Positions 13,924 through 14,190 of a stretch of 64,000 nt of DNA are shown here, piece by piece. Position 1 is the stretch's first letter; each line of letters starts with the position of its first letter. Below the pieces are notes generated by a model. The model was not told the DNA's origin, ran no database searches, and worked only from the letters and a program-made list of their open reading frames with translations. A program made the position numbers and the translations under genes. Origin of the DNA: Hemiscyllium ocellatum (Eukaryota); contig NC_083409.1 of the NCBI RefSeq assembly GCF_020745735.1, forward strand, positions 19,860,341-19,924,340. Direction: 5' to 3'.

Positions 13924-14190
13924 TGTGCTGTCAGATTCCAGGGAGTACAGACAGTTCACAGTTTTCTCCCATCTCAGTAACAAACATCCAGCTGCTCCGA
14001 GCTCTTTCTTTCACTTCCTCTCTGGGTGAAGTTTCAACCTTGTGCTCTGACAGTCTTTGCAGTTATTTTTTACACTGGGGCTTTCTGCTGTGGTCAGAAT
14101 CTCTAATAATAAGTGTCCAATCAGTGACAATCACAGCAGCTAAGAGCAGTCAGGACTGAGGATCCAGGCTCACTGGGAAACACATTGGGA
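13924..14190 (-). promoter_or_regulatory. Module B copy 1: candidate lymphoid enhancer or promoter
   Basis: GAGGAAGTGAAA (14020-14009), CAGCTG (13989-13994), TGTGGTC (14089-14095) and CCAAT (14117-14121). About 96% identical to copies 2 and 3. Function is inferred from motifs only. Confidence 0.55.

Follow-up and report, generated by a model that had tools for sequence, protein, structure and literature searches.

Among non-tetrapod immunoglobulin (Ig) enhancers, the catfish Emu3' element is the teleost heavy-chain (IgH) 3' enhancer, a single-copy and experimentally active sequence that carries an octamer and muE5-type E-boxes. Among light-chain enhancers, the core of the chicken lambda enhancer contains, in this order, an E-box, a TGCGGC motif, an NF-kB site, a MEF2 site, the sequence CCAATCAG and a PU.1-IRF4 site (Fig S2B, PMC3972084). 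Mutation of the NF-kB, MEF2, PU.1 or IRF4 site strongly lowers the hypermutation-targeting activity of this core, and human and mouse lambda enhancers have kept the same four sites. Besides being an enhancer, the amniote lambda core (that of chicken cIgLambdaE and of the human and mouse lambda enhancers) is described as a hypermutation-targeting diversification activator (DIVAC) element. The PU.1-IRF type of site corresponds to the Ets-IRF composite element (EICE), with the consensus GGAAnnGAAA (PMC9454692). Sharks have dozens of separate mini-loci, each composed of variable (V), joining (J) and constant (C) segments; the way in which these are activated, excluded and hypermutated is an old open question, and promoter-enhancer complex formation has been proposed as the limiting step (PMC2435157). 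Full-text literature searches returned no Ig enhancer described in cartilaginous fish; absence there is no proof of absence. The present analysis concerns a stretch of 64,000 nt of contig NC_083409.1 of the shark Hemiscyllium ocellatum (hereafter the window), which contains one kappa V-J pair and three copies of a conserved non-coding module. Based on its conservation, its linkage to the V gene and its motif grammar, the module is given roughly an even chance of being a lymphoid cis-regulatory module, probably an enhancer, of each shark kappa V-J-C mini-locus.

Copies, boundaries and linkage of the module

The window was compared with itself by BLAST, and the copies were placed in three- and four-way alignments. 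All three copies named in a preliminary description of this DNA were recovered (BLAST identities of 94.1, 93.8 and 92.3%), and the high-identity unit was found to measure 352 bp, not ~260 bp as first proposed. A fourth copy was located in Chiloscyllium punctatum contig BEZZ01005289.1 (L001; copy L), which was found via its annotated V protein; a second C. punctatum contig, L002, stops short of the module. The copies and the blocks used for comparison are as follows.

13920..14271, minus strand (read like the V gene that lies downstream): module copy A, 352 bp
35230..35582, minus strand, same orientation as A: module copy B, an orphan, with CCAAT changed to CTGAT and a 1-nt insertion
59599..59950, plus strand: module copy C, inverted, bordered on either side by uninterrupted ancestral sequence and with the highest number of private changes (12)
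59951..60220: ancestral left flank (V side), kept in the window only at copy C, recurring in L001 and in contigs of organisms E and F
15592..16012: right homologous flank of copy A, with partners at 35672-36143 (B) and 59022-59440 (C)
10227..10934, with partners at 30885-31592 and 62807-63478: block X, between the module and V, ~1.8-2.5 kb from the V leader

Copy A lies 5.5 kb upstream of the V leader (ATG at 8395), as had been stated. L001 is colinear with the kappa cluster of copy A (cluster A) over ~10 kb at 83-93% identity, shared transposon insertions included; its module (3268-3615) and its V leader (near 10001) are 6.4 kb apart, and the relative orientation is that found in A. Because a Tyr replaces the first conserved framework Cys in the V exon of L001 (10115-10558; TATLTYKSS vs TATITCKSS), this V gene is probably a pseudogene. 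The proposal that the module travels with kappa clusters was borne out by cluster A and by the C. punctatum cluster, with fixed orientation and distance, but not by copy B: on the side where a V exon would be expected, block X is present, but no V, J or promoter remnant was found. A stretch resembling a long interspersed nuclear element (LINE; 29288-29729) occupies the place expected for the V gene of copy B.

The right flank is common to all copies. The left flanks of copies A, B and C are mutually unrelated from the block edge on; the extra flank attributed to copy B is indeed unmatched in the window, but no two of the three left flanks agree. The left flank of copy C (59942-60209) matches L001 3899-4161 at 83% identity, and because it recurs in C. 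punctatum as well as in the contigs of organisms E and F, it was regarded as ancestral and those of A and B as replaced. Block X is common to all three units and to C. punctatum, and a Pfam search with it gave no match; the ~3 kb between block X and the module are mostly not alignable between copies.

All four module copies are free of inserted elements, and separate insertions or breakpoints lie at, or within ~15 bp of, the module edges. An open reading frame (ORF) for a LINE endonuclease adjoins the left edge of copy A, and a high-copy repeat sits at 14272, the right module edge, in both A and L001; in B, the replaced left flank marks a further break. In A only, this repeat is followed by a weakly GIY-YIG-like element (a weak hit), and copy A is parted from its right flank by later insertions (14272-15591). 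In L001, a 283-bp insert stands at the left module edge, where it displaces the C-type left flank.

Motif content of the module

The module was found to carry a group of predicted lymphoid transcription factor sites, which are invariant in the four copies except where stated.

13989..13994: E-box CAGCTG, 14 nt from the EICE
14009..14018, minus strand: EICE GGAAGTGAAA, predicted PU.1/Spi-B plus IRF4/8 type
14077..14086, plus strand: NF-kB-like site GGGGCTTTCT, one mismatch to the NF-kB consensus GGGRNWYYCC
14089..14095, plus strand: RUNX-type site TGTGGTC
14103..14112: MEF2 consensus site CTAATAATAA (YTAWWWWTAR)
14117..14124, plus strand: CCAATCAG, of NF-Y type, present in A, C and C. punctatum but lost from B
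14053..14162: best-kept core of the module, with 5 of 110 columns variable among the four copies and 0-5 pairwise differences

In the V sense, the EICE comes first and is followed, after a gap of 14 nt, by the E-box. The MEF2 consensus occurs at just one further site in the 64-kb window, and the combination of EICE, E2A-type E-box and MEF2 site was present in none of 2462 other 352-bp windows. None of the 36 positions of the E-box, EICE, kB-like and MEF2 sites varies among the four copies (hypergeometric P=0.007); when all six motifs are taken together, 2 of 47 positions vary (P=0.05). The motifs listed in the preliminary description were found as it gave them: AGAGGAAGTGAAA, CAGCTG and TGTGGTC are kept in all three window copies, the PU.1/IRF composite (GGAAnnGAAA) is present and invariant in A, B, C and C. 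punctatum, and CCAAT stands in two window copies (at 14117 in A, and in C), with CTGAT in B; the kB-like and MEF2 sites and the EICE-to-E-box spacing make the motif content richer than described there. Its larger claim, that of a selected cis-regulatory element, agrees with the bounded, non-coding, low-copy nature of the module and with its good preservation relative to the flanks in deep comparisons, but the motif set on which that claim was built varies at 2 of 27 positions (P=0.33).

The motif order also bears on a second interpretation, namely that the module is the upstream promoter of a sterile, non-coding RNA transcribed in the direction of V, by which the cluster would be opened. The CCAAT/Y-box and a TATA-like TAAAAAATAA would then lie upstream, and PU.1 sites would stand close to the start, as they do in many lymphoid and myeloid promoters that lack a TATA box. 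Read in the V sense, the sequence presents ATTGG (14121-14117), the MEF2, RUNX and kB-like sites and TAAAAAATAA (~14072-14063), and then the EICE and E-box 45-80 nt on, an order that would suit a promoter, as would the orientation relative to V, which is constant in A, C and L001. Unrearranged shark Ig light-chain (IgL) genes are reported to give sterile transcripts, but according to the same review promoters appear only at V segments (PMC5192425). Moreover, no conserved splice donor follows the block (CAGGT in A; CAGCT in B, C and L), the module occurs in no run recorded as RNA, and the RNA-type runs that share the DNA sample of organism A contain zero module words. A promoter of this kind is considered distinctly unlikely. 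Two further runs, X16 and X19, were guessed to be RNA, but their repeat-to-module depth ratios resemble those of low-coverage DNA, and a single-cell raw-read RNA run of organism B gave no reads on any part of the 2-kb stretch, its high-copy repeats included; these three runs are neutral as to expression.

Conservation of the module relative to its flanks

With the right homologous flank (15592..16012 and its partners) as the neutral comparator, the module proved better kept in the deep pairs than the neighbouring duplicon, as had been claimed. Over 351 ungapped columns of the module, identity was 94.3% between A and L and 92.9-94.9% for all pairs. The right flank (338 ungapped columns) gave 91.7% for A-L and 78-81% for the deep pairs, and block X (10645-10934 and its partners, 266 ungapped columns) was intermediate, with 94.4% for A-L and 86.5-89.5% for the deep pairs. 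The earlier estimate of ~10 differences per ~250 nt was slightly low but fair, given that 11-17 differences per 267 nt were counted in 13924-14190. For the deep pair B-C, 25 of 351 module columns differed vs 75 of 338 flank columns (Fisher p=1.9e-8), and when B and C were compared in 50-bp bins, identity fell from 0.90-0.98 inside the block to 0.61-0.90 past 35600.

The distribution of changes over the branches was then read from the four-way alignment. Private changes numbered 8 in A, 8 in B, 12 in C and 7 in L for the module, 10, 32, 33 and 11 for the right flank, and 9, 13, 17 and 5 for block X, respectively. Sites that group A with L were counted 15 times in the right flank and 8 times in block X; in the module there were none, and three module sites back other groupings. 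The shared stem of A and L accordingly carries 15 shared changes in the right flank and zero in the module. The block is thus nearly frozen on the old branches and changes at a near-neutral rate on the recent tips, a pattern that fits constraint for as long as a cluster is functional followed by decay, or homogenisation by gene conversion. CpG decay was ruled out as the cause of the star-like pattern, since only 3 of the 43 variable columns fall at consensus CpGs.

Several observations weigh against an enhancer reading and are collected here. In the close pair A-L001, the module (20/351 differences) is not significantly better kept than the flank (28/338; p=0.23). The module tree is star-like and conflicts with the flank tree, and the young lineages A (8 private changes) and L (7) have as many as the old lineage B (8); this pattern of private changes and tree shape fits gene conversion as well as it fits relaxed constraint. 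The module of the orphan copy B is kept as well as the others despite having no V gene. The NF-kB-like site is one base off the consensus, and the motif set was partly picked after the sequence had been seen, which makes the tests on it partly post hoc. Alignment of the module to the chicken lambda core was not significant (the best match is 13 nt around CCAATCAG, P=0.14 vs shuffles), and 28% of genomic windows score as well against that core as the module does. Finally, to our knowledge all known Ig light-chain enhancers are intronic or 3', and the module differs from them: it lies 5.5-6.4 kb upstream of the V leader, neither in a J-C intron nor 3' of C, and no C exon was found near it within the window.

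The tree-based points are those expected under neutral concerted evolution, in which the module would be a functionless gene-conversion hotspot among kappa clusters and its motif matches incidental. Such a process would account for branches of near-equal length, for the lack of A+L sites in the tract when the flanks hold 15 and 8, for the three sites with conflicting groupings (including an adjacent pair that joins A with C against B with L), and for the equal preservation of the orphan copy B and the decayed cluster A. It leaves unexplained, however, why the limits of the tract are sharp and agree between all pairs, why insertions are found at its edges but never inside, and why 36 motif positions are invariant (P=0.007) in a rare combination. 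In addition, the C. punctatum module is no farther from the window copies than these are among themselves, though its flank is 8-9% from that of A, an argument that carries weight only if the species are different. As an explanation of the whole pattern, conversion without function is held to be unlikely. The conflicting informative sites do suggest that some gene conversion occurred, and a conflict in phylogeny between tract and flanks is compatible with function too. The preliminary description had itself named a gene-conversion tract as an outcome that would count against its proposal: the star-like module tree and its conflict with the flanks go in that direction, and a motif-specific signal was obtained only for the 36-position set.

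Copy number and nature of the module

To estimate copy number, contigs of a ~4-Gb whole-genome shotgun (WGS) contig set, X1 (organism A), were placed on 58700-60700 at a likeness of at least 80%. Summed k-mer depth was 1000-4200 on the module and 340-900 on both flanks, compared with 45,000-700,000 on the true repeats of the same stretch and 6-38 for individual long contigs. If single contigs are taken as roughly one locus, the module has a copy number of roughly the order of 10^2, which is within range of the kappa gene count of the nurse shark, for which about 60 kappa genes have been reported (PMC5192425). The depth peak at 59705-59838 (A 14032-14165) coincides with the 110-bp core and is an independent sign that the core is best kept across many paralogues. 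Module words were present in runs from 10 studies that carry six organism labels, and in no run did the share of these words exceed 46%. Contigs of organisms E and F cover the module and its flanks, and their listed mismatches lie for the most part outside the core or at positions changed in copy C alone. No match was obtained when metagenomes were scanned with an invariant pattern of 37 nt. A short repeat of very high copy number was noted at 60509-60642 and also at 14272-14399 and L001 3079-3151; its summed k-mer depth was 5-7 x 10^5 in the WGS run with 6-38 per single contig.

Other identities of the module were examined and rejected. It is not a protein-coding exon, given that its longest frame has stops in B and C and that a protein search with the ORF of copy A was empty; nor is it a structured RNA, with no Rfam match at E<=1 and a folding z of +0.69. 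A dispersed high-copy transposon, which the preliminary description had named as a finding that would speak against it, was likewise dismissed on the depth of 1000-4200 vs 45,000-700,000 for repeats and on the lack of terminal repeats: a search of the module for terminal repeats, a target-site duplication and coding capacity returned only short chance repeats and no conserved ORF.

A low-copy fragment derived from a transposon, for example the regulatory part of an old element, might still be carried in the cluster duplicon and also elsewhere, with no Ig role. In copy C a CR1-like 3' tail runs on into the first ~20 nt of the module, copy B is not part of any V-J, and the summed depth of organism A on the block is 2-10 times that of the flanks, all of which would agree with such a relic. 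A higher block depth is, however, also expected if the flanks of diverged copies fall under the 80% likeness cut-off, and the depth stays two to three orders of magnitude under that of true repeats on the same stretch. The module has neither coding capacity nor terminal repeats, whether inverted or direct, no further partial copies were found in the window or in the ~20 kb of C. punctatum sequence (L001 and L002), and the same flanks recur in C, L001 and the contigs of organisms E and F. A transposon relic without an Ig role is accordingly regarded as very improbable.

Kappa cluster A and the remainder of the window

The only V-J pair in the window belongs to cluster A, and its parts were annotated as follows.

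7281..8395, minus strand: kappa V-J of cluster A
8395-8347, minus strand: leader of the V gene (ATG at 8395)
8160-7859, minus strand: V exon
7858-7831, minus strand: recombination signal sequence (RSS) of V, 12-bp spacer
7345-7318, minus strand: RSS of J, 12-bp spacer after an 11-bp deletion
about 7317-7283, minus strand: J

Identity of the V exon is 90% with a Chiloscyllium punctatum protein, 80% with a Scyliorhinus torazame protein and ~55% with mammalian V-kappa, which places the source of the window among the orectolobiform sharks. A C exon and a second V exon were looked for across the 64-kb window, and neither was found. The J RSS of cluster A (7318-7345) lacks 11 bp (ACAGCCTCTGC) that are present in L001 (~11180-11220) and L002 (~3870-3910), and the J RSS spacer is 23 bp in both C. 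punctatum clusters. Because of this loss, V and J of cluster A both carry 12-bp signals (12/12), and the cluster is decayed.

A telomere-like hexamer array was observed at 9142-9927, ~750 bp upstream of the V leader of cluster A. Roughly 9203-9869 is absent from the colinear C. punctatum contig, and the array is therefore a lineage-specific expansion or insertion. The remainder of the window is largely transposon-derived, with rearranged segmental duplications in addition (BLAST self-comparison). A large inverted duplication (21293-27263 vs 54423-47713, 84-94% identity in pieces) has an offset unlike that of the module-bearing inverted pair (30471-36139 vs 63960-59025), and the region must therefore have been rearranged more than once.

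Proposed mode of action

Under the enhancer reading, the module would act, always in the same orientation, from a site ~5.5-6.4 kb upstream of the V promoter. PU.1/Spi-B together with IRF4/8 would bind the composite site, and an E2A-type factor would bind the E-box 14 nt away, in the manner of the mammalian kappa 3' enhancer core. NF-kB-like, RUNX, MEF2 and NF-Y-type factors may bind the tightly kept 110-bp core, as in the amniote lambda core. Acting jointly in B cells, these factors would make the cluster accessible and active, and they might in addition mark it as a target of somatic hypermutation. Factor binding, enhancer activity and the target gene are here inferred from the site content of the module and its position relative to V. 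Constraint seems to last for as long as a cluster is alive; near-neutral recent change was seen in the four copies studied, which come from decayed or orphan clusters, and gene conversion has probably contributed by homogenising the copies to some extent.

A bounded candidate of 350 bp with mutable sites makes the question of how sharks activate, exclude and hypermutate their mini-loci directly testable. The same candidate could show whether the PU.1-IRF4-E2A, MEF2 and NF-kB grammar is ancestral to jawed vertebrates.

Comparison with known immunoglobulin enhancers

The catfish Emu3' element resembles the shark block in being a non-tetrapod Ig enhancer with an E-box and lymphoid motifs in a position that is unusual relative to mammals. 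It differs in belonging to a heavy-chain locus, in its motif set, in being single-copy and in having an activity shown experimentally.

The likeness to the core of the mammalian kappa 3' enhancer concerns GAGGAA, the IRF half-site GAAA and the E-box, which in the shark stand in the same order and orientation; the gap to the E-box is 14 nt in the shark vs 14-15 nt in the human and mouse kappa 3' enhancers (Fig S5B, PMC3972084). However, the mammalian enhancer is located 3' of C and is present once per locus, whereas the shark block is found upstream of V, once per mini-cluster and in the order of 100 copies, and it has no sequence similarity to the mammalian element outside the motifs.

The E-box, the MEF2 site and the PU.1-IRF4 composite of the amniote lambda core are found in the shark block, together with an NF-kB-like site. 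The order NF-kB-like, MEF2, CCAATCAG is that of the chicken core, chicken and turkey have the same CCAATCAG octamer after the MEF2 site, and a TGYGG motif and CCAATCAG are placed similarly around the NF-kB and MEF2 sites in these two birds and in the shark. On the other hand, in the shark the EICE, which is inverted, and the E-box flank the kB/MEF2 block on the opposite side, the shark kB site is one base off, and the position relative to the gene differs. As judged from the sequences compared, the module resembles amniote enhancers in its site vocabulary and in how the sites are locally arranged, and this likeness does not demonstrate common descent.

It is possible, though somewhat doubtful, that each shark kappa mini-locus owns an upstream enhancer in which the PU.1-IRF4-E2A triad known from the mammalian kappa 3' enhancer is joined to the NF-kB/MEF2/CCAAT core known from the amniote lambda enhancer. 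In that case, such an element would offer a handle on the one-at-a-time switching of ~100 autonomous clusters, and the light-chain enhancer logic, possibly including the targeting of hypermutation, would be older than the split between cartilaginous and bony vertebrates.
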